This document shows positions 360-28,784 of a DNA stretch of 64,000 bases, in pieces. The notes beneath the pieces were generated by a model. That model did not search any database and was not told the origin of the DNA. It worked only from the letters and a program-made list of their open reading frames with translations. Positions within the stretch are counted from its first letter, which is position 1; each line of letters begins with the position of its first letter. This DNA is from Phallusia mammillata (Eukaryota): NCBI GenBank assembly GCA_965637545.1, contig OZ281501.1, positions 7,130,001-7,194,000 of the forward strand. Reading direction: 5' to 3'. The position numbers were made by a program, and so were the translations under genes.

Positions 360-3300
360 TGGGTTGTGGATTTGCATCGCAATATGCGGGCAGTTGAAGC
401 CCAGTGCATAGGTTTCCAAGATCGACTGCGAAAACGAGGGGAAATTCTACATACATCCTATATCTATCACAAGTCCTCAGAACAAGTAACTAAACAGTGC
501 AAACAATTAATGCAAAAAGTAAAAAAACGAATACCAATACACTACTTAAGAAATATTTATCTAAAACTCATTTAAAACAACATTCTTCAAGGTTACTTTT
601 ACCCACATAAGTGAAACATTATGTCTAAACGAACTACTTTAAGTTCTGTCGGTTTTACATCCAGTACTTTGTGTTTAGATTTCAGCGGAACTTGACAAAC
701 ACTTGGAGATATGTAAAGTGGAGGCAAGTCTTTTAGACCCACTTGAAGCTGTACAAAGCAAACTTGACGATCTGCACCATCAACACGGAGTAGGTTAAAT
801 ATAACATTCATCATTTTCCCATGTGCTTGCTTGTGTGTAATTCCAGTGCTGGAAAACATTAGAAAGTCACCTAATTTAGGACAGACGGTTTACCGCTGAG
901 CCTGCGTAGCCAGCTGCTAGAGCGCGAGTCCCGTAAAGACTCCTGTCTTGGATTCAAATCCCACTACAGGCTAATTTTTTTGCCTACGACTTGTCAAATG
1001 GGAATGCTTGGTTACCGGCTGATTCGGTATGACGTCTTTAATGGGCCTGGTGTACTGTGATTTATGTATGAGTGTGCCGTGATTACTGGTCTTATAGTAT
1101 TTGTGTTCATCTTTGCTAATTTAGTAGCTATTTCTCTTCTTTTTTTGAAGAAAATTCGTCAACTTCACGAAACTGTTGTCAAAACCGCCACTTCGTTTCT
1201 TCATAAACTGGCGAAACACTCCCAGGAGCTACAGCATGATTGCGGGTTTGTTTGAATAAATGTTTCATAGCAAACTGGCTAATGATCTTAAAGTAACTAA
1301 ATTGTCTAATTTTATCTTCTATGTCAACCTATTGGTTAGTTTTAAACTTAAACCCTAACAAGTTTTTTAAAGATTTTCGAGACGTCTTAATAACCTTAAT
1401 GGACAAACATATCTTCCACCCTATACTGCTTTCATTGATTTATATTTTTTCATTGGTATTTCGGTTACAAACTGGCATAAACATACAACTCGTAAACAAA
1501 TGTACTCAATTTTCTCTATTTGCTCATGTGGTCAAATCAAACCAGTGCCAACGGTTTATGTTGTCTTTGTGTAAAGCAGCAAATTAACTTGCTTATCTGT
1601 ATCCTGTTTTGTTACAGTATCAATAAGTACGTGGTGCAAGTGCGCCACACCGTGGCCAACATCCAGGACCGTGTGAGGCGTTGTGAGGATTTTACAGAGT
1701 CGAGCAAAGTACGCCTTGAGCACGTGTTACAACTGCAAACTGCACAAAGAGACGTGAGACAAGTAAGTAATTTTTTATTATGCATTATATGAAATTTGTA
1801 GATTGTGATTGTGACTGTGATCGGTTGGTTTCGCAGGCTGTGGAGTGGCTTTGTGACGTTAGAAACACGATACAACAAACACACAGGGCACTTGGCAAAT
1901 CAGCCAAAGAAGTGGAGTTTCTGATCAGCCAGCACGCTAATATAAAAGTAGGTTGATCGTTACTATAATTTTGTGGCACAATACGTGTGGGTTGAACTAA
2001 ACTCGAATCAGCAGCTCCTGATTCAGCAGTATTGTTACGATGATAGTTGTACGGGATATTTTTAAACGTTGGTTATTGGTTAATATAGCATATCACGTTT
2101 AACGACCCTGTACATTTACCGTTAGAAATTTATACATTTACTAGCATTAGTGGCTATACCAGAGTTGTGAGTAAAAAAACGCTGTTTCGGGCTGGGTTTT
2201 TGGCTAGTTTTGGCCGGGTTTTGGCCCCAATTTTGGCCCCGCTTACAACTCTGAACTATACTTGTAATTAGAAAAGACACATGTCGTGTGCTTACTTGAG
2301 AAGTATCTTCAATTGATATTGGACTCTACATTGATTATTAGGCAAGCGCCAAGTTGGCATACGACAATGGCAACAAACATCTTTCAGCGATGTCTGTTCT
2401 GCGACGCTACCTCGAGTTGTCACCACCATTCGGCGCCCCTGCGTCACCCAAATTAAAACGGTCGAAAAGCAGGTAAAAAGAAATTGCATGCAGTTCATTT
2501 ATTTTATAGACATTTGCCATTGCAGCGTTTTCATATTTCGTTTCTTAACATTGTAAACATTTAGATGTTTTACGAGATAAACAACCCATATTTCTAGATT
2601 AAGTGTGTACAACTTTTTTGCTAATAACGGCAAACATTTGGCGATCTGCGTGAACTGTTTACGACGTTACCATATATTTCTCTATACTGTTGTTGCCTGC
2701 TTTTATGCATTATTTGCACGCAATCAGTGTACAAAAAAATGACATGTATTGGTAATGGCCATGTAATATGTATGGCTTCTGCCCCCTTTTAGCTCACTAA
2801 ATCCTTTCAGATTAGTTTTAGACTCGCAAAGAGTTCTAATTATATTACGGCTTTCATTGCATATATTTTAATACACAAGTTCACAGCCGCATAAATTTGT
2901 CGAAACTGCATAATTGTTCTTGCAGTGGACAGTTGATATCGTCAAAGGGGAAACTTCTTCCGACACTAGAGGACGCTTGGGAGGCTTTCAACCTGGCATG
3001 GCATGAAAGACGAAGTCGACTTTCGGTTGCTCGCCTCTTTCACGAGAATGTAGAACAGGTGACAACAGAAACCGGTATAACTGTTTGCACAGCAGACCGT
3101 TTGATACTTACTGGTTGTATTTTAGTTGTTTAAACGTGGATCCCAGTTGGAAGTAGATTTAGATGATGCTTATCCCACGTCTGCTCAAGTTCCCCAAGAC
3201 CAAATCACAAAACAAGTACGTTGAAAAAGGAATATAGCAAACATATTTTAACAGAAACAGTGTGAAAGTATCATAGTGTCACATCAAGTGTCATAGACAT

Positions 3301-4472
3301 TAATAGTGTGATGTCTTGCGCCATGTTGTCTTTCCCACAAACAGCCGTCGATTTACCTGAAACTTAATTTTTAGGAAGAAAAATTTAGGAGGTATCTTTA
3401 TTAGATGAGCTAAGCTGACCAAACTTAATACACGCACATAAAGCACATTAACAGCATTTCTGATTCCATGTTGTTTGATTATAAGAAAATGAACATTTTT
3501 TTCAGTTCTTTTAATAAAATTATCACAGACGTCGTTAACTCTCTGCATTATGTTATGTTAAAAACGATTACCTTAAAAAATTAGTAATTTGATTGGTGTA
3601 TATGCAGCCTCGGTTTGCGCCCCTGCGTGAAGCTCAGTACGCCTTCACTGACGATGTTGCTGACGTGATGAGGTTGGGTTGTAATCTTTTGCAAGTTATG
3701 GATTCTGACCAGACCGACGGATCTTCATATCGCGCGTAAGTTCATTGTAACAGATAGAAAAATTTATTAACATAAGTGACGGAAACTACATCTATAGGGG
3801 AGTTTTTCGAACGTTTAAATTTTATGATTTGCGGTTAAAAAAATAATAATAATAACATGCGGAATTCAAGTGTTAAAGAAACTTTGGGGTATATTTTGTA
3901 TTCGAAATCCACTAAAGGGCCAACTAAAATATGATTCCATTTTTAGCTGAAGTGAAGTCGATTAAAACACAGGCACTAAAACCGTATCGTGAATAAATAC
4001 AAATAGGAACAATTTTGCAATTGAAGTTACCTGATAAAATGAACACGTTGTATGTTTAATTGTAATCTTATTCGTAGTTCAGCTACTTTGTTAACTCAAT
4101 CTCATGTATAGTCCACTTAAAATAAAGTTAAATTTGTTGTCAACTAGAGTGAAAACATGAATTTCTTTCCGTCATCCTTGTTTTTCGTTTGGTGGTGACT
4201 AAAAATTAAAAAAATTCTCCACCGACTAATAACTTGAGCACTGCACATTTAGCTTTTGTTCCAAATTCAAATGTAAAAAACAATTTGTTACCTGATTTAG
4301 GCAAGACGGAAGTCAACAAACTTTGCAGATGATTCAGTCAAAAATGCAAGAGCTCGATCATCTCAAGACCTCGGTGAGAACTAAGTGGTGTCGGTTAAAG
4401 GGAGACCAGCTCTCCGATGTCAACATTCACAGAAGAGATTATTTTCCCAGTTGGGTGGAAGGCGTTAATGAG
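360..4472 (+). CDS. SESTD1: SESTD1-like spectrin-repeat protein, 3' part (5' end upstream of window); multi-exon
   Basis: Phase-consistent exons: 360-485, 679-789, 1151-1245, 1618-1762, 1837-1947, 2342-2472, 2926-3058, 3126-3215, 3608-3735, 4301-4472. The translation (NIQDRVRRCEDFTESSKVRLEHVLQLQTAQRDVRQ|AVEWLCDVRNTIQQTHRALGKSAKEVEFLISQH; LPTLEDAWEAFNLAWHERRSRLSVARLFHENVEQ) parallels the recalled C-terminal half of vertebrate SESTD1 ([26 protein letters not shown]...[56 protein letters not shown]). The last exon ends in a phase-0 donor, not a stop. Confidence 0.8.
900..1063 (+). mobile_element. tRNA-derived SINE copy
   Basis: tRNA-like head GCCTGCG...GGATTCAAATCCC...CAGGC, followed by a body (GGAATGCTTGG..ACCGGCT..TTCGGTAT...GGCCTGGTGTAC) shared with the 15208-15378 and 47499-47565 copies. 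Confidence 0.7.
2160..2253. mobile_element. Very short hAT-type MITE
   Basis: TIRs CAGAGTTGTGAG / CTTACAACTCTG; flanks ggctatac / aactatac (6/8 TSD). A related end GGCTTACAACTCTA occurs near 7817-7829. Confidence 0.55.
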
Positions 4473-5049
4473 GTGAAATATTGTGCATGCATTTTAGGTG
4501 AAACTTGTATATCAGTGTCATGTAGATTTTGTATAATTGTTTTTTTTTCCTGAAATTGTTCCAAAACAAATTTGTTTCCAAAAATGGCCAGATATCTAAG
4601 TCTGTATTTTTCCACAAAAAGTGTCGGAAAGAATTTAATGGGTTCATAGCAAAGTATGGGCTTTTACTCTCTGCCGTGTGCAAAAGAAAGCACTACCATT
4701 TCGGTTTAAAATAAATGACAAATAGTTTTTCCGTTGGAAATTTAAGATATCAAACCAATTTCCTAAATATCAGTACACAAGAGCTACAGACCACAGTTTA
4801 CGTGCACTCTGTGCTGGTCAAGTGTTAATAGCATAGCAAGGCATTTGTGAAACGAATTCCAGACATTTCAAAGTGCCACTCCACTCTGCTCACGCCCTAA
4901 TGAGGGCGACCAAGCGCAACCGCGCAGTCCAAGAAAACACTAACGTTACATTACGCAAACGCCAGAGCTGCCCATTACGAATAAATTTCACTGGACGCAG
5001 TGTGGTTAAGTGTGGTTTATAATAGATTTGATTGCTAAGATGCACGTTG

Positions 5050-5640
5050 TCAGATCGCTAGGGAAGTAATACTAAACGTCTTTGCCTTGGAAGGTATATC
5101 TATTTCAGATTGTGTATGTTTGGTTAAGTTGAGGAAAAAGGGCGTTTTAAGAAGTATACTGCTAAAATGTTGTTGATAACAAGTACAGTTGTTTAGAAAA
5201 TTTTATCTGACGGAATGTTTTACTGATTTCATTACACTTGTACCTCAGTTATTCATTAGTTTTTTAATTTGTATTGTAGTGTATAATGTTTCGAGATCAA
5301 AAGGCAGAAATTCAGTGTGGCCAAGTATGGTTTTCTGATATTGGTTTTCGTTTGTTGATTTGATTGTCAAGTTTTACGTGGTTAAACCGCTCGGAAAGTA
5401 ATATTGAATTTGTTGGCCCTAAAATGTAGACATATTTCAGATTATGTGTGTTGGGTTATGTTGTGCAAAATAGGCGCTTAAGAAGATTAGGTAATACTGA
5501 TATATAGTTGATAAACTGCACAGTTATAGCCAAAAATTGATTTGACAGATCTTTTAAAAAAGATTAAAAAATAGGCTTGCAACCTAGGTTGTCATTAATT
5601 TTTAAATTTGTATTTTACTGTCCAATGTTTCGCGTTAAAA
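5050..5640. repeat. Diverged tandem duplication, about 330-bp period
   Basis: GGAAGTAATA...ATTTCAGATT.TGT.TGTT.GGTTA.GTTG...GGCG.TTAAGAAG...TTTGTATT...AATGTTTCG occurs twice. Confidence 0.6.
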
Positions 5641-6182
5641 AAAGTTAAAAATAAAAAACAATTAAGAAGTTTACAACAAAAAAAGGTGAACTTAAATCCA
5701 AAGCTACGTGCCAAAATATTATTCGTAAAAGGAAAATTTTAAATCTTGTTTGTGTAGCATGGTATAGTCTTAACGGTTATGTATTTACGCTTTGGCATTT
5801 CAATCATCACTGTCCACGTGGTTATAATGGAAAGCCTCTGTTGATTTGCCAAATGTGTCCCTTGGGAGTTTCACCACATAATGCCTTAACTTCCGTAAGT
5901 AACATTTTGACCTCACACCCGCGTAACAGCCTGGAACGTGACGAGCAGAGCGTACAAGAAGGAAAGCTTAACTAACTTGAAAGCAGAAACGATAGCATCA
6001 TGGTCCTCATATAAAAAGGAATCAGACTAAATAAAGTTGTAACAGAAAAGTACGCGTATGTTTTTTTTTCATAAGTTTTTCACGAAACTGCAATATTGCA
6101 GAATTTAGGAGATGATAGTTACTGTTTAAGTTTGCTGTGAGAAAACAAATCCTAATAAACCATAGAGTCTGCATGATAAGTA

Positions 6183-6234
6183 AGCTACAGACAGTGCACA
6201 CCGTTTCGACATACAAGGCCTCATCAGTGCAGCT
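6183..6234 (-). ncRNA. Type I hammerhead ribozyme, intact core
   Basis: The minus strand reads AGCUGCA CUGAUGA GGC cuuguau GUC GAAACGG ugugca CUGUC UGUAGCU: 7-bp stem I, full CUGAUGA/GAAA core, 3-bp stem II, stem III ACGG/CUGU, and a GUC cleavage triplet. Confidence 0.85.
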
Positions 6235-6438
6235 GATGTCAAGACCATATTGCGGCACTCCAGTTTTTAACAGGCTGAAAAGCCATGACTCACAAAGTCT
6301 GTTCGTTCGCACAAACATCTTTTAAAAAACTACTACTTTTCTGTATATGTATTTAATTTTCTATATTGCTTTAACATAGGTAAAGAAAGTGAGATAAGGT
6401 ATTTAAAGGCAATGGTATGTTGACAATGTCTATGTGAA

Positions 6439-9400
6439 ATGTCTGATAAAGAATTTGCTGAACGTGGTAGCCATTCTCCAAATCAACTCGACCAAACTCA
6501 ACAGCCGCGTGAATCGTTTTACGACAACGTTAATCTGACCGAATCAACACTTGCAAATGTGAAATATCGCCCAACCCGTTCAACTGTACACAGAAATCGT
6601 AAACGGGTAGCAGGTGGTACTAACTTTGAACTTCAAGAAGCTGTGACAATGGAAATACAAAGCGATGTCCATGAAAGCGTTGAAACTCCTGACTCTGTAG
6701 ATGGTTGTAAACGGGTAAAATTCGAGTCAACGGACTATCCTAAGCCTAAATGTCACGAATTCAGGGACAGAAAGCCTACAGAAACAGATACAGCTGTTAT
6801 GGACGCTGAAGAGGGAATTAGATTAATGTGTCCATTGACAATTTCGCTCGATAACGACCCAAGCGTGAGTGAAAGTGGCGACTGGTCATACGAGGGTGAT
6901 GTGGTTGGTCATATTTGTGTCCAGTCAAACGCTGGCCAGATTGGCGTGGACGTTATCAGTGTAAGTGGCTGCGCCTGTTAACGGGATTCGGATTGCATCA
7001 TGATGTGTTTATAGAGTGACATTTATTTTGAAAACGTAGCTGTAACTTGCAATGATTAAAACCTGTTGACGCCTTTGTTAAGTTGTCTTCCAACTAAAGT
7101 TGCTTGACCTTGTGTTTTGTAATTCATAAACTGCATTTATAGAAAATTCCATGTTGGCAACAATTCCAATACAAACTATTCTTCAAATCAATGCTGCAAT
7201 AAAGAATTAGTAGCATGATGGCAGATGTATTTGTTTATAATTTCTTTGTTGTGTTTACAGTCAACGGATTGGATTCGTATGAAGCTGGTTCAGTGTACAC
7301 CGAACGCTTTCGACATCGGCAGGAACTTGAAAGAGGCCAAGAAACTACAAGTTCAACACGAAGAACTTCTGCAAAAAATGAAGGTTTAAGAAATATTTTT
7401 AATTGTATAAATGTTAAATTCACAACACGCTTAAAGATAGTTTAGCACAGTAAATCTCCCTTGGCAATTGGTTTCTTTTGTTAAATTCTTTATTCTATAT
7501 ATGGTTGATTTCAATCGTTGCACAATTATTAACGTGTACTGGTTAAATTAATCTGAACAAAATCCTGAAATGCATGCAGGATAAGTCCCTACACGGCCAG
7601 CAAAGAAGTGTGTATGCCTAAACCTATCATAATTGGCTACATACGAATAGCCCAAACCCGAAAGTACGAGCACAAAACCCAGCCCGTAACCGATTTATAA
7701 AAAAACAAACCCGAAAGTCGGTGAAATTGCGGCACAAATGACCGAGTGTGTATAGTCAGTCTCGAATCAAGCTCGTTTTATTGAAATTTTGAACCCGAAC
7801 ACTGACCTAGAATCCCGGCTTACAACTCTAGTTTAACAAACTGATAAATATGACGACCTTACAAGCACTTTGTGTTCGCTGTACAGGAAAAGGAAGATGT
7901 GGTTCTAGCTCTTCTCGAAAAAGAACAGCAATCGGAAACGATGAACGACAGCTCCACAGTGAAGTTCACATCTCAGTCTTCAGTTACTTACAGCAGTGAA
8001 CCAGGTTCGTCCAATGAGCGGAAGATGCACAAAGCGATGAGCAAATCTCTATGTGACTTGTGGCGGGACTTGAACGGTCTGCTAGCACGGAGACACACCC
8101 TGCTTGGAAAGTCTGTTAATTTCTATGATGCCGCTACGAAGGTGGGAAATGAATTTTGTAAATTACTACTGCATGCACGAAATAGAAATACTTTACGAGT
8201 ATATAGAAGTATAAACGAATAGTTTTGGAATCTTGGTATTCGATTAAACCAGGTTTTTAGATTGCGATAGTTCAGGCCGCGTTAAAATATATGAAGTCTA
8301 AAGATCAACCTAGATGTTTTCTAAGAAAGTCAAGTTTCTGTTACTGAATTTCGTATTGTGATTGGACAAAAGTTCAGTAGCTCCATATAAGTATTATCCG
8401 CTCTGTCTTCAAACAATAAATTCAATTCAATATTTTTCGCGATTACTATGAAACATTGTTTCTTTAACTATTTTACCTCAAGAAGAAACGGTTTTGCTGA
8501 TTTAAGTTGCATATGTCTGTGTACTGAAATCCGTCTGCAATTTTCACATATCCTTAGTTCTCCAATCAATTAACATGCATGGAGCAATACCTAAAGTGGG
8601 AGGAGCTGCCTGCTGATCGCGCGAGCGCCGAAAGTTTGCTTGTGACGTTACAGGACATGCATGACTGCATGCTCGATGCGTCAAAAGTCTGCACTAATTC
8701 AGGGAGAGATTTGATGACGATGCTTAAAGCTTTGAAAGCAAATCATCCCGAAAGACACAAGGTAAATGTGTTTGAAGTGCAAATAATTTTACCACCATGT
8801 TTATGAAAGTGTATCAATTTTTCATCATGTTTACTAATGTGGGTAAAAAGTCCTTCTCAAACTTGTTAATGAGCCACGGATATGAACTGATTAAAACCTT
8901 TCATGACTTTTCTATCATTAAAACGAAGAAAAGTACTTGCGACCAGGGAGTCGTATTGTTTGTCATATATGTTCGGTTCGGTTCGGTACAGGTTTTGCGA
9001 AAAATACGTTTTCGCTTATGATTTCAATTCTGGCAAATCACGCTCTCCCAAACAGTTTGGGTTTTGTTCCGGTTCTGGAAATTTATCCGGTCCAAACCTT
9101 GTTTGCGTTCTGCGTTAGCTCTACATATTCGAAAAGACCTAAATACCGAACAAACAACAACAAAAAATTAGCGTGGTCCTTTACAGCAAAATGCTCTTGT
9201 TTTCCCATGTTTTAATAAAAATTACCAACCCTCAAATCAGACATTCTTAACCACACTTTTGTTTCAGTTGAGTTTTGGAAGCGCCTGTGCTGCTATTGAA
9301 TGTACTCTCGAATCGTTGGTGGAAAGGAGAAACCAGATCGAATACAGATACGACAAGAGAATACTTGAACTTGAACACGCGCTAAAAATCAGGGAATGGG

Positions 9401-12400
9401 AATGTGAGGTTGATCAGGTGGGTTTGCTTTGAATATCTTACGCTACCTGAACGCAAATAGGCATTTGCTTGTCCAGATTTTAGCCTCGAAGTTATTGATA
9501 TCGCGGCAGACTTTTACACATACTTCTGCATGCAGGCCATTTCGGGTAGAGCTAGTGTAATTAACCTCTAAGTTAAAACAAGACAAAATGAATTTAGGGA
9601 AGTCTAAAATATGTTTAAGTTGGGCGTTACTTTATATTTTTACTTTAATGTCCGTTTGTGTACCACGTTTTACCAAAATAATATAAGCCCAGTGGTGGGA
9701 TTTAGCCGATTCGCACCGGTTCTATACAACCGCCTCACGAAATTTTGTGAGATCAGCGGATCGGTTAGCATTACTGGTTACTTTCAATGGATTTTTGCAT
9801 CTTATCTGATGCACTGATTTTTGAGATCCGGCTAAAAAATATGACTTTTGTGATAGAATCGGCTGACAAAACAGTTGAATCCCACCACTGTATAAGCCCC
9901 CAATTTCATATGACTGTTTTTTATGTTTATACTTACACTAAATTTTGACGTGAAGAATATTTATTGTACTTACCTACCAAATTACAGTGCTACTAATGCG
10001 AACAGTGGTCTGTTCTCTTGTGGTAAATACGTATAGTTTTACTTTGGACAAATCTTAAAACCACGACTCTGAACCTTTTGCTATTAGATTGTTGATTGGT
10101 TCGACCACACAAGGGAAGTTGCCTTGGAAGATTCGGAACTTGGCAGCGGGAAAGCTCGTACAGAAGCCATTCTATGTCACCTCGAACAAGTTAAAGAAAG
10201 AGCGCAGGTACGACTCTTGCAGAAAATGTGCCTTTAAATGATCTTTTGTAGTAACATTGGTCATAGCTTTTTCATCTTCTAAATTATTGTTGTTGTTTTC
10301 ACGGTTTAGCCTTAGTTTTAAACCGGCTTGGAGGTTCGGTAGGAGGCTGAGCCGGTCAAAGCTAGTTTGAAACTGGATTATTCCGGAAAAAAGCTTGTTT
10401 TTCTTCTGTTTTTTGAGCCACAAAAACTTCTGAGTACAACTTTATTTATTTTCAATAGGATAAATTAGAGGAAGCAAAGAAGTTAGTGGGTCACGGGAAA
10501 GAAGAATTAAAGGCGTTCGGAGCGGACCTCGTTTCGTCCAAATCTACGCTACTTGATGAGCTTGGAGAAAGTTTCATGGAAACACTAGACTACCGCAGAG
10601 ACGAACTCACATCGGTTGTGGCTTTTTACAAGCTTACTGCAGAGGTATAAACTTGTAAAAGCTTAAAATCAATAAATGATAAGCTGTAGACAGTGAACAC
10701 TGTTTCGACCTATAATGTCGCATCAGTGCAGCTGGAGACAGGCCGTATTGGCTAAAGTGTAGTCATTCAACACAACTCCAGTTTGTTGGAAGTAACAGGC
10801 TAAATGCCATGCCTGACCTATTCTGTTCGATGCCACAACTGGGTTTAAACCACAGGTGAACTGGCTCCTAATAGCTACACTAACCAATACGGATTATCTA
10901 GCTAGCTGCACTGGTGAGAACTTATAGGTCGAAATAGTACACACTGTATGCGGGTATAAACTTATTTGGTACAATATCTTTACCTGGATAAGGGCTACCT
11001 GATTTTTTTGTCCTGCGAAACGTCTATACAAAAAATCCAGATTAAAAAACGCCTGTTATGCTCGTTTGGACTCAAACGTACTAGACCAATAAATTGTACT
11101 GAATTGTTGGAAATGCATTCAGGCTGAATATTCTTTGGAAGAAATCAAGAAAAAGTTGATGCTAGGCAAATTCTCACTTCAGCGTGACGAAGCGGATGAA
11201 CAGTACAAGAGATTTACATCGAGTATTGTGGCTGCATGCGAACCTGCTTTGCAAAAGGCAGATTATATCATCAGTCCCAGGTACACTGTTATAAACAATG
11301 TATAAATTCAGGGTGGTTTAAGATTAATGGCATCGAGGGCCACTTTAAGGATATGTATAAGGTAACTTCAGGTAATTTTAAAATCGGTTGAGACCAAAAT
11401 CTTTTTCTCATACTTTGAAAAATTTAAGCAGTTTATTTTTTTGCTGTAAGTTAAACGCCTATTTTGGTGTATTCTGTTTGTTTCTAATTCTGACGAAAAA
11501 AGTAAACCGTTGCTTGTAAAGAGTTGTGACTATTGCAATCCATTTATACACTGCCGTTATAAAATTGCATTCTAAAGGTATTTGCGAGCCGCATAAAATG
11601 TGCAAGAGCTTGAACCACAATATTGATTATTGCAAACCCTTACCGAATGAGATACCAAATGGTTTTTCTAACATGGATACTAATGAATGGAATAAAAGTT
11701 TTGTTTATGCTTAAAGAGATGATGACGGAATGGAAGGTGTGGAAGGCTTGCTTCACGCCAGGGATAGGATATTAAGGTCACGTGATGATCTCCTCGGAAT
11801 CATCAACCGTCATAGAAATGACGCAAACCGAATCGAAGAAATGATGAAAATCTTCTTTCAGAATTGTGACCAAGTAAGTTTGGTTTTATGAATGAACCTG
11901 TCTGGCTTAAACTTGCACAAAATGGTTTTGAAACGTTATGAAGACTATTTACACTCTTTGGTGTTTTTATATAGTTAAAGAACTGGACATGCGAAGTTGC
12001 GGAAGGAATGCTCTCCACCAATGGAGTAATGGGAAATAATGTTCAAACTGCCTCACAGTTCCTTGTGTGGCATAAACTCCTTGCCCAAGACGTACAGGTA
12101 ATCTACATGTAAAATTATTTTACAACTATCTGGCATTAGCTTTTCTTTATGTCAGTGCAAGGCACTGTTAAAAAATATATACAGAAATGCTTGCATAGTT
12201 TCAAACTTACATACAATTGTCAAGTATTTTCCAGTTATTTTCGGCTGATGTTGATAAAAACTGTAAATGTTGTGCAGTGGACGATTAGGGACTGAGGTAT
12301 AGGCATTTGGCCCCCACCACTAGAGGGGGGCGAGTCGCCCTATTGCCCTATTGAGTGTTTTCGCTCTATCAACGGCAGTTATGTGTGCATACATATGTGC

Positions 12401-15400
12401 AGAAATGGTCCCTTTGTAAGCTTCAGCCAAGGTACTTGTACAATCTAATCCCCCCTTGCTGTGCCTAAATGCGACAGCCATTATTGAAACCGAAAGAAAT
12501 GTTGTTATTGTTTAATCTCCCGTTATAAGTCGTAACAACTTATCTTATAGTACTGTTTATTACATTTGGTTAGATAATAAATGGAAACCAAGCTATTTAC
12601 ATATAAATTACTGTGCAACTGCAATGATTTATTTTGATATTATGTTCAGGGCAAATCTGAGGATCTAGAAACCCTCGTAAAAACAGCGAACGAATTGCTT
12701 GATGTTGGAGTGAGCAAACCGGCCGAGGTTCGTGATCGGGCAAACGAAATTAAGGAGACCTGGTCAAGTTTGAATTGCAAAGTTTCACAGCGAATTAAGC
12801 TCGCTAACAATTTTGTGGAATTCCTAAATTCAGCTGACAAGGTAAAGGTCTTTAAATTAATTCGAAAACGGCTGTAAAACATTTATACTTCCAAAAAGTT
12901 TAGTGGCTAATTGTTTTTTATATTTAGTAATCATTTTGTAGTACAATACGCAATTATCGAATTTAAACATTCGTATTTTTTGATATAAAACATTTAAACG
13001 TTTTAAACTATTTGAGCTATTGGCCTATTGGCCTTTTGACATCGTCGAGCGAAGTAACTGTTTATGTTGGTTTTATATACCCGATCAGAAGTCAATTTTA
13101 AAGCGTCAGATCATTTTTGCAATTTACAAACAACAGCCATAAATCTTTTCACATAAACTGATAAGAAATTAATAATTTATCACCCCACAAAAGATGTTAG
13201 ACCTAATTTATGGACCATTGAACCACTAACCCGAAATCGGATTTTTTTGTCTTGGGAAACGCATTTTGGAAACACTATTTTACCGTTTAGGCGTACGAAG
13301 AAATGGAGGTGGTCCGGGGAAAAGTTTGGGAAAGGAAGCAATGTAAAATCGTGGACGTTGCGCCACAGGTTTTGAAAGAATGCGAAAACTTAGTGAAATC
13401 TGTCCAGGATTCATGCTCAGCTCTGAACGACCAAGGATATTCAACAAATGCCCAGCTAAAGGAAGGTATCTCAGGTAACAACTTATTCATTATATTTTTA
13501 CATATTTAGTATAATATCAAATACAGAAAACCTAGCTTAGTCCGCACCCGTTTTGACCCAAAAATGTCCATATCAGGCGAAGACCTGGATTAACCGATAT
13601 ACCAGAAAAGTAAATCTTTCTTCAGTAGTTTAGCATTTATGGGCTTAAACCTTGAACAGGTGGTATGTATTTAGCTCTTATGAAACAGCAGTGTTTCCCT
13701 TTCAGGCGACTCGTTTGATATAACGGGTGCAGTGGAAAAAGTTTCCGAAACACTGCGCAACGTTCATCGGAAGAAAAGCGAGCTGATGGACGTGTGGTTG
13801 TCATGGAGGTATAAATCTGGAGTGAGTATCGAAACTGATGTCCAGTGGAAGCAAACTGAAAAGACAATCAACAGAGTAAGTGCTTGTTTCCATTCTGTTT
13901 TATTTGTTTGCAAATTAATCAAGTTACCGAGTTTTTGTGCTAGAGACGAGACGAGGTAAAACTTTAAAACTTTTACCAAAATACAATTTAAATATGTGTC
14001 TAAACGTAATGCCAATACAACTCTATTAGCTTTTAAACACCAATTTTTTTAAGTCAACTTATTAAACAATTGGAAAAAAGTAATGGTTATACTTGCTTAT
14101 GCCGCTTATGAGATGGTTAAACTTGCTAGAGACGAGACGAGGCAAAATTTAAAGTGTTACCAAAACACACTTCAAGTTTGTGTCCAAACGTAATGTCAAG
14201 ACAATTCTATTATCTTTTAAACACCAAAAATGACTTTTTTGGAGTCAACTTATTAAATAACTGAAAAAAGAATTAAACCTCCCCAAATTTGATAACTGTG
14301 GCTTGAAAGCAACATCACATTTCTTTACATTTGTGCATCTGTAGCATTTCCCCATACTGTCGCAATTTAAGTAAGATCTTTTGTCGTATTTGATTTTATT
14401 TCTTTACTCAATTGTATAGGACAGTGGACACATATATAGACGTTTCAAACTTCAAAATTCTGCCCAACACTTTAAAATTTTACCCATTTTAAAATACATG
14501 TGGATTATTTTTTTAGCTAATGGCTTCGCTGGAAAATCTCGAGCAATCGGTTTTCATAAACGAAATGGTTTTGCTCGGAGAAGACGTGGAGTCAAATCAG
14601 GAGTTGTTGGAATCTCTCAAAGATAGACAAACTCTGCTTCAATCCATTCACGGAGAAATAGAGAAAACTGTGGCGGTAAAGTTAAAACAATGTGTAATTT
14701 TTTTAGTACTATATAACTTTATTAACTTATTCAAAAACATTTTGAGCGCTTATAGGGAAAAAAGTATTTGCTACATATTATGGATTTTTTTAATAATGTT
14801 GTTATTTATAACTAATTACCAAAAAATCCTGGGCACTTTTAGGGAGAAGTAATTAAGTAACTTACTACATTTTCGTATGATGGAGACTCGGTAGTGTTTT
14901 TAATTTAATTTTAGTGTTTTATCAATTTATTATTAATTAAGTTCATTTTTTACTTTGCAGCATTGTGAGATGATTGGTCTGCGAATTTCACAATTCACTT
15001 GCATTGATAAATCTCCTGAGAAAGGATTTGGAGAAGAAGATATGGAAGAGCAAGATCCGATCAGAAGAAGGATCACGGCTCTTCTCACTAGATATCAAAT
15101 GCTTAACACCAGAATGAAACATTATAAAACAGCTCTCACCGCAGCAGGGTGTTGCCACGAAATGATTGTACAGGTAAAAAAATGCATTTTTACATGATAG
15201 AGCAACGATTATGAATCAGTTAAAGTACGCCAAGCTTATCAAAGGCGCTATGCCGAGTCAAGCAGGTCTCCAAAGCATTCCTATGTCGCATAGCATTAGA
15301 TAGACAACCTAGCCTGCGGTGGGATTCGAACTCACGGCGGGAGCCTTTCCAGGGCTCCACCTATTGAGCTACACAGGCTATCGCTGGTCTGTTTTCACTC

Positions 15401-18400: not shown

Positions 18401-21400
18401 CTCTCTCACCATTAAAAAAATCACTCCTATATAATATACTACGTATAGTAGGCCTACTACGTAACCATACAAAGATCATTTTAAAATGATTAATTGTTTT
18501 ATCAACTTCACAGGTTAAATTCGCGGAGCTTCAGTGTATGTGTATATTAACAAATGTAAAAATTAAAGAAAATTCCTCTTTTCAAGTTTAAACACTCCTT
18601 CGGAGCAATTCCTCCCCGTTTGGAACCACTGCTCTAGCCTATGCGGTGACCTCCACTAATAAGACCCCTTTGTTGAGTATACACCATCTTCTATTAAAAA
18701 ACAGAACGTCGGATGAGGTGAACGACCTTGTTAATCTCTTTGGAAAGAAAGTTCTCGAACGTCTGGAGGAGCAAACTGACAGGACTCAGAAGTTTGCTTC
18801 CATTATCGTGGAAGCGGAGGAGAGGGACGAAGAGAATAAAAAGGGCACAGGGGAACAAATAAGAGCGCATCCGTTTAGGAAGATGATGAAGAAGAAACAA
18901 AGTGATATATTGGATTCCGTCAAAAACTTGAGGTTTGGCGCTGATCACATCTGTTAATATTCCTGTATGGTTGCACACGTGAAAAGGTCTGGCAGTCATT
19001 AGGCATCAAAACCAATTAGTATACCGAACCATGTGGCGCTACCGCTGACTATAAATTCTGACTGGGAAAACTTCCGACGAACAACGGTTTACTGTATTAA
19101 ATTTCTCTATTTCGAAAAGTGGATTTGTTTGCAAAACAAAGCTCGTATTAGGCCCTCTAATTTGCAGCACAAATAATGATGACTTAGAACTCTGGTTTGT
19201 GTGCAGCAAATTCTGTGCTTTATTAATTTGTCAAATCCAATCTTTCACCCAGGTCTGAAGTAGACAATCTTCATAGTCTGCTTGAAGGAGTAAAGAACAA
19301 TGTTCGCCGACCAGAGGCAGACTCTTCTTTACCCGAAGAGCCAGTAAGAAAGATAGAGCCTTACGACTTATCGGTCTTACTTGATGAAAACCTTCAGGCC
19401 TCATCGCCACAAGACAAAGACACTTCCGCTGAAGTTCATGAGCAACCTGTTAACGATCTCCCGCCACCCCCTGATTCCAGGACACTAGATATGCTGAAAG
19501 GTATGTAAGGTTGACACACTACGATACTGGCATGTAATGAAAAACAGAACTTGGTCTAGACTAGGGTTGCCATACGTCAGGATTTTCCCTGACATGTCAG
19601 GGAATTAAGTGTTTAAATCTGCGTCAGGGAGAAATGTTAAAATGTACTCAAAAGTCAGGAATTTAAGAAAAAAAATATAGATATACCATGAAATTAATGT
19701 TCCAACGAAGTTTCTAGTAGTTAGCTACAACCGCGTGTATACCATGAAACTTAAAGAGGTAAACTGGCGACGGGCAGGTTAACGTACAAGGTTACTGTTT
19801 CGTTTTGCAGTGTGTATGCACGCGTAACAATACCTGTTTGTTATTAGCAGAGATGTACCGAATATTCGGTTCTGCCGTTTAATTTATTCGGCCGAATCGG
19901 TCATTTTTGCAAAGATTCAGTTTCGGCCGATTAATTTGTTGCGATTCGGCCGAAACCGAATCTTTTACGAACACAAATTTAAAGCGTTAAACGTGTCTTT
20001 TCTGCTTATTAAGGTATCACGCAATCTTTCAAAAGCCAAAACCTAACGAAAATCGCGTCAATTTGTATCTTTTTCAACACATTATCGTTTTTCCCACTGT
20101 AGTCAATTTTTTTTAATTGATTGACAGTTTGCCAATCATGCTTGAGGCAATTTTAAACCCCACAGAACTGAAATAAGGACGAAACACAACTATCCTGCAC
20201 TAATTGCCTGGTAGATAAACATTTTTTCATGTCAAACGCGTAGCGTACGACTTCGCATGACGCCATAAATGATTCGGTTGATTCGGCCGAATTTATTCGT
20301 CAAAACCGCCGAATATTCGGTTGCGGCCGAATCGAAATTTAGCCGATTCGGTACATCACTAGTTATTAGTTGACTGACAACACGCGTTAAATACACAAAT
20401 AAAAAATTCATTTGCTTTAACTGTGTACCTAATATGCAAGAAACTAACTAACAACGAAAAGTCGAATGTCTTGTGACATAAAAACATTTTTTCAATGGCA
20501 TTTTATTTTAAATTTAAAAAGGTCGTTTGTGACTCCCATTGTTTTTTTTAGTTCTGTGTGAAATCCGAATGGTTTTAGAGTGGTACAGGTTGGCGACCCC
20601 TGATATATGTGCTTATTGTTTCAAGGATAGTAAGAGTAGTGAGCTTAGCCTAATAAACTTAACTAAACAGAAGCCTACGCACAAAGTTAATTGACAAGGA
20701 TCAGAGTATCGTATCTAACGTTTTCTCGTGTCGCCGTCCATGTGACTTCCGAATATTCTAAATTTATTCCGGAATAGAAGTGTTTGGATCGCAAAAATGG
20801 TTAACGCAGCGGTTCTTAAACTGCGGGGGTCCGCGGTCCTTTAGGGCATTTTGCTGGGACCGCGAAAAGGTGGAAGTAATCCTATATTCTTATTTGGCCT
20901 CAGTTTGTGCAACTAAATAAGTTTAAATCAAAGTGAAAGTGAGAATCGACCGTTTCCATTGCTAAACAATAGGCTTTATTGCATGACAACTAACAAAAAT
21001 GCAAAAATTTTGCATAACTAGCTAAAATCCTGCAATCAACTTTTGTTTTTCTGACATACACATTCAGACTTAAAAGTTTGCGAAAAACTGGGTTAACGCA
21101 ACCGAGATAAATTTTGTCAGGGATTGTGTATCATAAAATATGGCAACCCTAGTCTAAAACTACTAAAATGTCGAATCACTTTAAGTCTGCGTACTGTAGG
21201 TCTAAGTCAAGTCTGTGTACTGTAATTATTTCCGTGTTTAATATAAAGTGGAGTCTTTCGCAGTGTCTCGAGTCAATTTCAAATTAGTACATTAGTACAC
21301 AAAATTGATTAAAACTCGACCACTTAAACCGATTAAGTAAAAAATCTTTGAAAATACCCGGATTTCACGAAAATGGGTTGTTAGAAAACAGTAATTTGCT

Positions 21401-24400
21401 TCGTGAGATTTCTCCGATATTTTGATAATGTGTGCCATTTATTCTAACAAAAAGGGGTGTGTTTCGTACACACATGTTAAAATCAAAATCTTTCTTTGGG
21501 ATTGCAGCAGTTTGCTCTTTTAATGGACGTTAAATAGAATAAATTTGAATGCGCAAACTAGCTAATAAAAATTTTTGTTGTATATATGAGAGATTTATGT
21601 ACTACGATCTATTGACCAACTGGCTTCTCACGTAGTTCCAGAAACTCGCGAAAAACCCAAACCTGATTACCAGTGCAGTCCAACTCCGAAAACCGATACG
21701 AGTTCATCGTCGATGTCCTTGTCGTCAGCATCAGAAGAGTATTTCCTCGAGTCAAACTACTCTGACAGTGACATTGCTGCTGGAAACGAGCGAGTCCTAA
21801 CGGGTAAAAAACAGGCGCTTTGTAGTTATTACCCCAAAAAGTCTTTCCCTAACTGCAACCGTTTATTTTCAACTGTAACATAATTTTGCTAATTAAAACA
21901 ATGAGAGTGGATGTAAACAAGTCGTTTTTTTTCTAATTAACTTTGCTATCAACTAAAAGTTATATATTTTAAGCTATCAATGCATTTTGAGTAGCAGAAA
22001 CAACTATGATTTAAACCTCCAAGCAAAATTATGCATGAGCAAACTGTACTGTATGGTAATCAATTTTTTAAAAAAAGTTTTATCAATAATTACACAGTGT
22101 ACGGTATTAAAAAAAATCTAAATAATTCCAGCACGTAAAGCTGATGCGCCGACAATCACAGACGACGATCAAAACACGCCACCATCTTCTGCAAAATCCA
22201 CATCACACGACCGGACGCCTTCAACATCATCATTCACAACCAACAGCAGGGGTCAGACGCCTCCACCTAAACCGGCCCGCCAAGGTCGATCGGCCCGGCA
22301 GCGACGGCGAAGGTTTTGGGAAAAGGAGTTGGACCAGTATGCGGCATCGTGGATTGCTGACCGTGAGCGCCCCAAGCCTAAAGCAGTTGGTTCTGAGGGG
22401 GCGTCCACAGGTTCAACTGACGAAAGCGAAAAGGTATATTACCGGTTTGCCTGAAGAGGCTAATCGTCCACCGCGTGTTCCAGCACTGTATCTACTAACT
22501 TCACGTGACATTGACATCACCAAAGTGTGTGAAGCCACTTATTAACGACAATAATCTATTGCATTATTGACACCATTGACTCTTGCCGTTGCCTTTCACA
22601 CTCTATCGTTCCAGTCGGTGATATTTTATAGTATTTTTTACGGTGGCAGGTTTTGTAGGGTGATAAATTGCCAAATGTTTGTTCAAGATTAACGTAGAAT
22701 ATCATCTAGCATAATATACCCAACAAAACGTGTTGGTAACTGTAATCTGTACAGTGGCGTGCTTATCATACAGTTACATTGCAAACATTTCTACCCCAGA
22801 AACTGAAGGTTGCCTAAAGTTCAACCCTATCCTGATAACACATAACTAGTTTGCCAAATGTTTTGATATTTTTTGCCCCTTTTCAGCAATTCAGTGTTTG
22901 GCGATTAGACCAAGGTTTTCTTAATTCTATTGAAGCGAATTTTTTGTCGATATTTCGTCAGTTTTCGTTTTTCACTAACTCATGCATGAATCACAACAAA
23001 CTAAATCGCATTTGTTTGAACACACTTTACGACTGTTTTGCGTTATCTTGCCACGAAAGCCACGAGTTTTGGATTGCTCTCCCATTTTTTTCACTGCTTT
23101 TACGAGTATGCTTTCACTGTGCAAAATAATACCCGGTTGTGTTTTTTTGTTACTTCATCTATTTATATTGTTCACCATTAAATCATTTTCACCATACAAC
23201 ATTTGTAGCGTAGTATTAACGTGGAGGGTTTAGAAAAAATATGAGAATAAGCAGACGGGCTGTAGCTGATAGGACATAGACTCAGCTAGAATGAAGTTCT
23301 GTAGCAGATGAAACGACGTTTCATCTGATTGTTAACAAATAGTTGTGAGGTTTATGTAAGAGGTGAATAGAAAAATGTTTTAGAATTTAAGCAAATTTAA
23401 ACACTTAGTGAGGTACGTTTAACTGTTTGCAAGGAACTATAAGTTGTTACCGTAAAATGAAAAAACTGTGTTTTCCGTCGATGTTTAGAAGTTTTTGGAA
23501 GAACTAACCAGGGGTCGTCAACCTTTACCGCTCTTCGGAGCCGTTCGGACTAAAACAACGCTGGGAACCACAAAGCCGTTTTGAAATTTGAAATGAAATG
23601 CCACTGCAAAAACGTTTTTGTCTCACGACTTTCGACATTTAGTTGTTAGTTAGTTACTTGCATATAAGGTACACTTGACAAATCAGTCTTGTCACATAGC
23701 ATTAATAATCGTCACGGAATGTGCTATCAAAACATTTGGTAATTTCAAAGACTGAGCCGCTTTAGACTTAGAGGGATCAAAGAGGCCCATGCGGCTCCGA
23801 AGCCGCGGGTTGGCGACCCCCCTGATCTAAACAAATAATGAAAAACATCAGAAAATAGCTAATGAGCCACTAAATTTAAATGAATTTTCAGATGTCGCGC
23901 AACATTCCTGTGACAAAGGCGCCACAATCGAGTTTACAACATCCAATAAACCAAAGTACAAATTCTGCATTTCATCGGTAAGTTTACAGCACACGGGACA
24001 CCCCATCATTGTAAAGTTATTTTGAACATGAATTTATGTGTTGTAGATTTCAAAACAAGCAACAAAAAGATTCTCCAAGTATAAACAAGGTGTCTGAATC
24101 AAAAAGTTTGATTTGTCCATCGCCTTGCGACACCGATGGACTTCTGGAAGCCGACGCATTGACTGGAATCATACCGGACCTAAACGACCCGGATAAATTG
24201 GAATATACTGTCCCGGATCAATTGCATAAAGCTCAATCAGAAAAGTTGGAGTCTGCAGGTGCCAGTTTTTACCAAAATGACTCCAAAGGGGGTGTTCACA
24301 AACGCCCCAAAACCACTGGCAACATTGGATGGGAAAGCTACGGAACAGAAACATTCACAGTCAAGCAGGATGTGAACGTGGAACAATATCGTTTAGTAAA

Positions 24401-28067: not shown

Positions 28068-28784
28068 GTTAGGTTATCAAGGCGTGTTTGGTAGGGTTAA
28101 AGGTTTTAGGTTTTTTGTGATTAGGTAGGGGTTAAGTTTTTATTGTTAGGGCCAGGAGGGGTAGCGAAAAACGTCGTTTTGTTGGAGGTGAGCGCAAAAA
28201 TCACGGACACTTCATTTCACGGGAATGTCACATGATTTGGTTGCTTATCACGATGCACGTTACTCATGTTGATTTTTAGTCACAAAGTTTTAAATGTTAG
28301 AAGCTGATATCAACCATTGGCTGCAAACGCATGTTATACACACGATATTTATGTTGAACCTTAAGAGTCTTTTGTAACTAAAATATTGATAAATATATTG
28401 CGTTTTAAGTTGATAAAGAGTAAGGAAAAATATTAAGATAGAGAACGAATAAAAAAACGCAGTTTTAGTTTTAACGAAAAAATATTTCAAACAATTTTAA
28501 CCATGCGAAAAAATAATCAAGAGTCTTATCTAAGTGATAGTTACAACAACTAACCCATTATTGCTTGCTTCATACAAGCTTTACTAACCGTTTTTTATTC
28601 GCTATTTGCAGGTTAATTTTGTAGTTTAATTTCACTCCATTTTCACACACTTTTACACATCACACCATATACATACACACGCACATATAATCTTTTAGTA
28701 ACATCCCTAAAAAATTAGTGCTTTCACCACCATTCGCTTTTCGCCATATTTCCTTTGTTCACGTGTAAGCAACCGAGCAACGTG

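Follow-up and report, generated by a model that had tools for sequence, protein, structure and literature searches.

SESTD1-like and CCDC141-like exons spliced in one reading frame in an ascidian

SESTD1 and CCDC141 are separate, side-by-side genes next to titin in vertebrates, and the question raised here is whether they are also two genes in a tunicate. The locus lies in the ascidian Phallusia mammillata (assembly GCA_965637545.1, 240 Mb), within positions 7,130,001 to 7,194,000 of contig OZ281501.1. This whole stretch of 64,000 nucleotides is referred to as the window, and coordinates are counted from its first letter. In it, exons resembling SESTD1 are followed on the + strand by exons resembling CCDC141, and titin exons lie downstream on the same strand. 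SESTD1, CCDC141, and TTN have been proposed to descend from one gene, named connectitin (Hanashima et al., 2025, J Mol Evol, PMC12198301). [quoted passage not shown] An original prediction, made from the letters of the window, held that the SESTD1-like and CCDC141-like blocks form a single gene, connected by a splice from 4472 to 7261. That splice was found in assembled RNA contigs, with both blocks in one frame. In contrast to vertebrates, the ascidian splices the two as one.

Six sequencing runs from two studies matched the locus at a low share, as would be seen with RNA. From four of these, X1, X2, and X3 of study P1 and X5 of study P2, the contigs were mapped to positions 2850-8840 of the window. 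In X1, X2, and X3 the splice from 4472 to 7261 is present with GT..AG ends and skips 2788 nucleotides; it was reported by the mapping tool as 4470 to 7259, and the exact boundaries are obtained after a cut of +2. The fusion-carrying contigs are 1547 (X1), 1795 (X2), and 1002 nucleotides (X3) long and have 0-1 mismatches to the window. As mapped, they consist of blocks 2922-3056, 3124-3215, 3608-3735, 4301-4470, 7259-7381, and 7885-8139, to which X2 and X3 add 8556-8646. The same contigs therefore carry the two junction exons (4301-4472 and 7261-7383) together with three SESTD1-like exons upstream and two CCDC141-like exons downstream. Contig sequence 5' of 2922 maps to the exon ending at 2472, and X1 and X2 add 716 and 847 nucleotides, respectively, of upstream exons. 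Every joint in these contigs has GT..AG ends, and since six joints lack their introns, complementary DNA is the only sensible reading of the three contigs. Depth across the junction equals that of the neighboring exons in all three runs. Moreover, the only assembled path out of exon 4301-4472 in these runs leads to 7261. The outcome named in the original prediction as its refutation, with 7261 reached by no transcript, did not occur.

The anatomy of the two junction exons agrees with the RNA. An AG acceptor and a GT donor (..GAG|gtgaaa) flank exon 4301-4472, whose frame is free of stops and closes in phase 0 on ..PSWVEGVNE. Exon 7261-7383 starts in phase 0 with STDWIRMKL.. after an AG acceptor and also ends in phase 0. 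The sequence features listed in the original prediction all proved correct. In a local frame check with the exact boundaries, the joined exon chain kept a single frame with 0 stops in 330 codons, and the SESTD1-type and CCDC141-type parts lie within one open reading frame (ORF) of one mRNA. Each junction exon is single-copy in the assembly. A retrocopy (processed copy) or chimera was considered as the origin of the fused form and ruled out, because both exons occur only once. The fused, in-frame SESTD1-CCDC141 mRNA is thus very probably real.

The upstream half was identified mainly through its Sec14-type exons, which are located 6-8 kb upstream of the window. The largest of these (L005:3654-3848) was searched against 1.84 billion representative proteins. 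Its top named matches were SESTD1 proteins, led by fish at 54.8 bits and followed by primate, lamprey, Saccoglossus, and amphioxus, with kalirin/Trio at ~39 bits. Fish SESTD1 shares 46-49% identity with this exon and, when searched against the whole genome, ranked the locus first (E 2.6e-12) and a Trio/kalirin-like locus second. In local tblastn, SESTD1 of fish, Saccoglossus, and amphioxus matched colinearly between the Sec14 domain and 3058, with the repeats covered. Judged by these matches, the genome has a single SESTD1 orthologue, the upstream part. Its matches to vertebrate SESTD1 (XP_077393010.1, P0006) continue colinearly over three spectrin repeats. However, a hallmark of SESTD1, namely a protein of ~700 residues that ends after the third repeat with its own stop, is absent here. 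Vertebrate SESTD1 ends soon after helix C of the third repeat, whereas the ascidian exon, as predicted, passes this point by ~23 residues, enters the next helix A, and closes with an open donor that is spliced in frame to 7261.

The Trio/kalirin-like locus, which has Sec14 and spectrin exons of its own, is separate and found 8.6 Mb away on the same chromosome (G000:C8:15742434-15753305). This fits a published remark that connectin-family genes share a chromosome. SESTD1-like exons were also found in the same order in a more distant relative (L012; ENA ERZ22157276 ctg13732l), with 48-65% identity; they are scattered over ~18 kb between the Sec14 exon and the counterpart of 3608-3735. That locus stops just before the expected last SESTD1-like exon. 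Among the contigs of three more distant relatives (L007/L012, L013, and L014), one reaches the 3608-3735 equivalent and none extends to the junction; introns are long and no genes were called further on. Contigs L009-L011, from the Joint Genome Institute, are too short to inform on the junction.

For the downstream half, four vertebrate CCDC141 proteins were found by tblastn to match colinearly at 7261, 7887, 9280, 10465, 12644, and 13711. Exons 7261, 7887, and 9280 onward are colinear with CCDC141 residues 28-675. When the first 700 residues of gerbil CCDC141 were searched against the whole genome, the sole match was exon 7261, and it was weak (E 0.06). The link to CCDC141 is bridged by a crinoid protein (P0044) whose residues 860-1569 match vertebrate CCDC141 at E 1e-30 to 1e-22. 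[quoted passage not shown] In vertebrate CCDC141 (P0162 and P0164), as in the ascidian, the repeats are colinear from exon 7261 on. The difference lies in the first repeat. The Spectrin profile is matched only from position 28 in vertebrate CCDC141, as seen in gerbil, and is preceded by an unrelated exon-1 peptide; in the ascidian fusion, judging from the orthologues, this repeat would take the start of its helix A from exon 4301-4472, the last SESTD1-like exon.

The position of the joint follows the architecture of the array. A phase-0 acceptor located exactly three codons before the helix-A tryptophan (Trp) recurs five times, at -330 (VHDW), 1837 (AVEW), 7261 (STDW), 10088 (IVDW), and 11975 (LKNW). 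Because this site recurs, the interval 4473-7260, which would be intergenic by vertebrate annotation, can be regarded as a regular intron of the array. The acceptors at 1837 and 10088 are those of the junctions AQRDVRQ|AVEWL and WECEVDQ|IVDWF, which had been quoted in support of the prediction and proved to be real. In a local alignment, ascidian ..FPSWVEGVNE|STDWIRMKL pairs with crinoid ..LKNFEAQIDE|STEWVRIKV, and both have an aromatic residue ten positions before the Trp.

The crinoid protein in this alignment comes from Anneissia japonica (XP_033111497.1, P0044; 1569 residues). It was among the matches of the Sec14 exon search, and its colinearity with the ascidian locus starts at the Sec14 domain, passes the junction, and extends to 12.8 kb. 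Pfam domains were assigned to it as CRAL_TRIO_2 (75-196), Spectrin_SESTD1 (427-535), Spectrin (871-975, profile positions 3-105), and DUF7799 (979-1090). As the junction equivalent is E880|S881, ten profile positions of the Spectrin repeat precede it. An AlphaFold2 model of P0044:850-990 (mean predicted local distance difference test score 79) has three long helices, of which the first, at model residues 11-43, crosses the junction equivalent at 31|32. Its best PDB matches are spectrin repeats, with template modeling scores of 0.75-0.79 and root-mean-square deviations of 1.4-1.9 Å, at Foldseek E-values of only ~0.01-0.1. A three-helix repeat that spans the joint, with helix A starting before it, is therefore predicted in the crinoid orthologue and is suggested for the ascidian by alignment. 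The original prediction had a spectrin repeat completed only across the splice. The repeat does appear to span the joint, but "only" was too strong, given that vertebrate CCDC141 has its first repeat from profile position 28.

A second crinoid model, from Antedon mediterranea (P0160; 2141 residues), has the same architecture. Both crinoid models have a CRAL_TRIO_2 domain, Spectrin_SESTD1, a full Spectrin repeat over the junction equivalent, DUF7799, and a CCDC141-like C-terminal half, and both match the ascidian locus colinearly over its whole length. They differ from it in having a ~170-215-residue linker before the junction, compared with ~20 residues in the ascidian, and no alternative first exon is known for them. 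Both were named "triple functional domain protein-like" by their source, yet they are without a RhoGEF domain, and by Pfam and search they hold SESTD1 and CCDC141 in one protein; these names are misleading. Other SESTD1-like matches, namely a wasp model and two unnamed proteins, had no CCDC141 part in the models scanned.

Two further deuterostome models annotated as SESTD1 end close to the same point. The Saccoglossus model (P0060, XP_006823022.1; 888 residues) ends 19 residues past it (..SINE|VGIK..), and that of Branchiostoma belcheri (P0085, KAI8485774.1; 1103 residues) ends 8 residues past it (..REMKQ|VSFK..). Both tails start with V, which is encoded from GT, and they look like read-through of the same open donor. 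Such endings may be annotation artefacts or real early endings. In these species, the gene may likewise continue into a CCDC141-like part, or its transcripts may be polyadenylated early.

The intron between 4472 and 7261 contains an ORF of its own, at 6439-6960. An in-frame TGA lies 15 nucleotides 5' of its ATG with no AG in between, and it closes with the consensus donor AGT|GTAAGT. The use of 6439-6960 as an internal cassette was ruled out, as the upstream stop is not separated from the ATG by any AG, and this anatomy leaves the exon only the role of an initial coding exon. When 6439-6960 was used in a word search, one protein was returned (P0001), from a genomic Logan contig (L006) of a related species, relative A. 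The contig also carries exons 2 and 3 in the same order. The ORF of relative A keeps the ATG (MSD..), the donor, and the length, apart from one 5-codon indel. Between the two species, the proportion of differing sites is 0.76 for synonymous sites (saturated), and for nonsynonymous sites it is 0.18 in the C-terminal third and 0.47 elsewhere. There is good evidence from this conservation that 6439-6960 is a real coding exon and a candidate first exon.

The same intron offers a possible early ending. Read-through of the 4472 donor ends the frame at 4551-4553, and AATAAA motifs follow at 4710 and 4980. On unique intron sequence, X1 has contigs at 4743-4984, which ends at AATAAA, and at 5782-5993. 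These intron-mapped pieces may be pre-mRNA or may belong to a SESTD1-only ending.

Several points weigh against the reading of the locus as a single gene with an internal start. The junction comes from three runs of one study; its RNA support consists of assembled contigs rather than raw reads, and the run type "RNA" is itself a guess. No isoform ratios can be drawn from contigs, and the fused mRNA may make up a small share of the transcripts. Nor do the contigs extend to the Sec14 exons, whose link to the junction is made by colinearity. In the second study, X5 covers SESTD1-like exons only, with no contig on CCDC141-like exons, and one of its contigs, 152 nucleotides long (4372-4523), continues past the 4472 donor. 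Both crinoid proteins come from gene prediction. When public assemblies were searched by profile words for junction-spanning ORFs of 230-740 residues, none was found at E <= 1, although this search was uninformative, as short exon rows were misplaced by MAFFT. Pfam applied to ten single exons gave only noise. The SESTD1-type repeat profile (PF24915) matched no exon of the locus when run exon by exon. In genome scans with PF13716, PF00435, PF24915, and PF25075 the locus was unmatched except for a weak Spectrin match at 12647-12796, the exons being short for PF13716. These blanks say nothing against membership, because the exons are too short and divergent for the profiles.

Exon 6439-6960 raises its own difficulties. 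It was at zero RNA depth in all four runs (X1, X2, X3, and X5), and no contig of these runs covers the span 6250-7249. Its likeness to vertebrate CCDC141 exon 1, claimed in the original prediction, is not above chance, with local scores of 21-25 that are reached by 23-62% of shuffles. The best local alignment with the vertebrate exon sits at the same position just before the junction, and the equivalence is positional only. Of what had been predicted for this exon, the upstream stop held and the vertebrate match did not. Its role as an alternative first exon fits the anatomy and the conserved ORF, but drew nothing from the RNA.

From all this, it is proposed that one ascidian transcription unit covers what vertebrates annotate as two neighboring genes. 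SESTD1-like exons end at 4472 without a stop and are spliced in frame to 7261, and the product is a single protein with an unbroken spectrin-repeat array. Use of 6439-6960 as a first coding exon would yield a CCDC141-only protein from an internal start, whereas read-through of the 4472 donor, with the frame ending after 26 codons, might conceivably yield a SESTD1-only protein. The locus would then represent the retained joined state of the SESTD1-CCDC141 part of ancestral connectitin, and in vertebrates the two genes would have become established through fixation of the internal start and the early ending. A probability of roughly 0.8 is given to this full statement, which combines a single transcription unit, the fused mRNA as its main product, an internal start, and a retained ancestral state. 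The last three can be drawn with falling strength: the fused mRNA as main product, then an active internal start at 6439-6960, then ancestry. It is reasonable to view the locus as a snapshot of gene fission with a putative internal promoter, and this view fits the published connectitin hypothesis.

The alternative that survives best is that there are two functionally separate genes that now and then produce the fused mRNA as a conjoined or read-through transcript. The main products would then be a SESTD1-only form that ends in the intron and a CCDC141-only form that starts at 6439. The X5 contig passing through the donor, the X1 contigs on unique intron sequence with one ending at AATAAA, the conserved ATG-initiated ORF, and the Saccoglossus and amphioxus models ending just past the same point would all suit such an arrangement, and joint transcripts of neighboring genes are known for CCDC141-TTN (PMC12657953, PMC12198301). 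However, the last SESTD1-like exon lacks its own stop, and the sole assembled path in three runs leads to 7261 at the depth of its neighbors, while no contig falls on 6439-6960. The joint is also in frame, at the regular intron position of the array, and the same continuity is kept in the crinoid models. Separate genes are on this evidence unlikely.

A secondary fusion, in which two genes were joined in the ascidian lineage and independently in crinoids, is more improbable still. It would agree with the published view that bilaterians have three genes (PMC12198301), with the separate genes of Drosophila and vertebrates, and with the protostome SESTD1-like matches that have no CCDC141 part. On the other hand, four other repeats of the array have a phase-0 intron at the very position used by the joint, and the helix-A start before it aligns between ascidian and crinoid. 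Fusion is also present in both a chordate and an echinoderm, and the gene is joined in cnidarians and placozoans (PMC12198301). Finally, a chimeric assembly, a processed pseudogene, or foreign DNA can be given very little credence: the runs are labeled only "RNA? (a guess)" and Logan contigs can be chimeric at shared words, but six consecutive joints are all exact GT..AG and keep one frame in three independently assembled contigs of differing length and orientation, with the few mismatches given above and both exons single-copy.

Compared with known systems, the single transcription unit proposed here has several precedents. Connectitin as described has the order and orientation of the ascidian locus, namely Sec14, spectrin repeats, further spectrin repeats, and titin downstream, and in cnidarians and placozoans its SESTD1 and CCDC141 parts are in one frame, as in the ascidian (PMC12198301). 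Cnidarian connectitin also has RhoGEF/PH/SH3 and kinase parts. That study shows no joined SESTD1-CCDC141 transcript in any bilaterian, whereas the ascidian, a chordate, splices both together. A paper on CCDC141 from the same group restates its view of three bilaterian genes. Joint CCDC141-TTN transcripts occur in mammals, and Zormin/D-titin is produced from Drosophila sls (PMC12198301, PMC12657953). Like the ascidian locus, these link neighboring members of the cluster in one RNA, and they have isoforms that begin at internal starts, as proposed for the ascidian; they differ in that the CCDC141/zormin part is joined to titin rather than SESTD1 to CCDC141. Kalirin/Trio, a paralogous but different gene, also has Sec14 and a spectrin array, with shorter isoforms from internal promoters as proposed for the ascidian, and these promoters correspond in position to the starts of SESTD1, CCDC141, and TTN (PMC12198301). 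A SESTD1-CCDC141 joint in a bilaterian was not found reported in the literature searched. The idea of a single ancestor is therefore already published, and what is new is a joined SESTD1-CCDC141 transcript in a chordate, within the published framework.

A wider version of the proposal is tentative and rather doubtful. In it, the locus would be a living bilaterian connectitin, a nested unit that starts at Sec14, takes in the CCDC141-like repeats, and continues into titin. Joined isoforms as well as SESTD1-only, CCDC141-only, and titin-only ones would be produced from first exons inside the unit and polyadenylation sites within introns, and the vertebrate three-gene state would have arisen by fixing pre-existing starts and ends after the tunicate-vertebrate split.

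Table 1. Features of the SESTD1-CCDC141 part of the locus (window coordinates).
Feature	Position	Strand	Basis and remarks
SESTD1-like exon, helix C of spectrin repeat 2/3, ending ..AQRDVRQ in phase 0	1640..1789	+	Colinear tblastn to amphioxus and Saccoglossus SESTD1 models; 48% identity in relative B (E 4e-10); boundaries from splice sites and frame
SESTD1-like exon starting AVEWL (helix A)	1837..1947	+	Phase-0 acceptor 3 codons before Trp; 65% identity in relative B
SESTD1-like exon	2342..2472	+	Loose-end consensus of RNA contigs 5' of 2922 maps to 2439-2468; 63% identity in relative B
SESTD1-like exon (..LEDAWEAFNLAWHERRSRLSV..)	2926..3058	+	RNA contigs of X1, X2, X3, X5; tblastn to fish SESTD1 residues 585-653
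SESTD1-like exon	3126..3215	+	RNA joint 3058 to 3126 in four runs
SESTD1-like exon, helix B of third repeat	3608..3735	+	RNA joints 3215 to 3608 and 3735 to 4301
Last SESTD1-like exon: helix C of repeat 3, short linker, first ~10 residues of next helix A	4301..4472	+	No stop; phase-0 GT donor; single-copy
Intron spliced out of the fused mRNA, 2788 nucleotides, housing the candidate alternative first exon	4473..7260	+	GT..AG in X1, X2, X3
Open frame continued by read-through for 26 codons up to a stop	4473..4553	+	Candidate SESTD1-only ending; could equally be pre-mRNA
CCDC141-like part, candidate for an alternative initial coding exon	6439..6960	+	ATG, 174 codons, phase 0, donor AGT|GTAAGT
CCDC141-like exon 2, STDWIRMKL.., helix A from Trp on	7261..7383	+	RNA joints 4472 to 7261 and 7383 to 7887; matched by tblastn to residues 28-78 of vertebrate CCDC141 (E 6e-5) and to crinoid residues 880-920
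CCDC141-like exon 3, with a disordered insert and helices B and C of the repeat in exon 2	7887..8141	+	RNA contigs; tblastn to CCDC141 residues 100-141 and crinoid residues 947-980
CCDC141-like exon 4	8558..8761	+	RNA up to 8646; joint 8141 to 8558 in X2 and X3; 3' boundary inferred from AAG|GTAAAT
Further CCDC141-like spectrin-repeat exons	9280..13884	+	tblastn matches 9280-9429, 10088-, 10465-10647, 11975-, 12644-12844, 13711-13884; boundaries approximate; colinear with crinoid fused protein and vertebrate CCDC141

Other features of the window were noted around these exons. A repeat of ~200 nucleotides at 893-1092, inside a SESTD1-like intron, is matched >90 times, on every large contig of the assembly, and is often tandem, with a spacing of ~355 nucleotides. 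Within the junction intron, 6173-6245 is a dispersed repeat of ~70 nucleotides with at least 40 genome copies and an RNA contig depth of 100-230, and the RNA contigs on it continue into unrelated sequence at both ends. This repeat gave no tRNA and only a weak Rfam match to Hammerhead_3 on the minus strand (6198-6250; 16.5 bits and E 0.43, against a gathering score of 48.5), and Rfam returned nothing at E <= 0.1 on window 4000-8000. Between the CCDC141-like exons and the first immunoglobulin (Ig) domain lie an ORF whose stop is at 18955-18957 and two long ORFs rich in Ser, Pro, and Lys (24036-24566 and 24790-25341). The first Ig domain, I-set-like and on the + strand, spans two exons at 28755-29630 and may be the CCDC141-type Ig or titin Z1.

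The published model puts the break-up of SESTD1, CCDC141, and TTN at the base of bilaterians. The ascidian fusion, together with the crinoid models, moves the split between SESTD1 and CCDC141 later; among chordates it would date from after the tunicate-vertebrate divergence, and the split in arthropods would then be independent. The locus also offers a testable mechanism of gene fission in which one intron holds a conserved candidate internal first exon, with an open donor before it whose read-through ends the frame. Invertebrate annotations of SESTD1 and CCDC141 are probably split or truncated at the junction point. In the heart, CCDC141 binds titin and nesprin-1. A form of CCDC141 with a lipid-binding Sec14 head would suggest a link from membrane to sarcomere in ascidian muscle.

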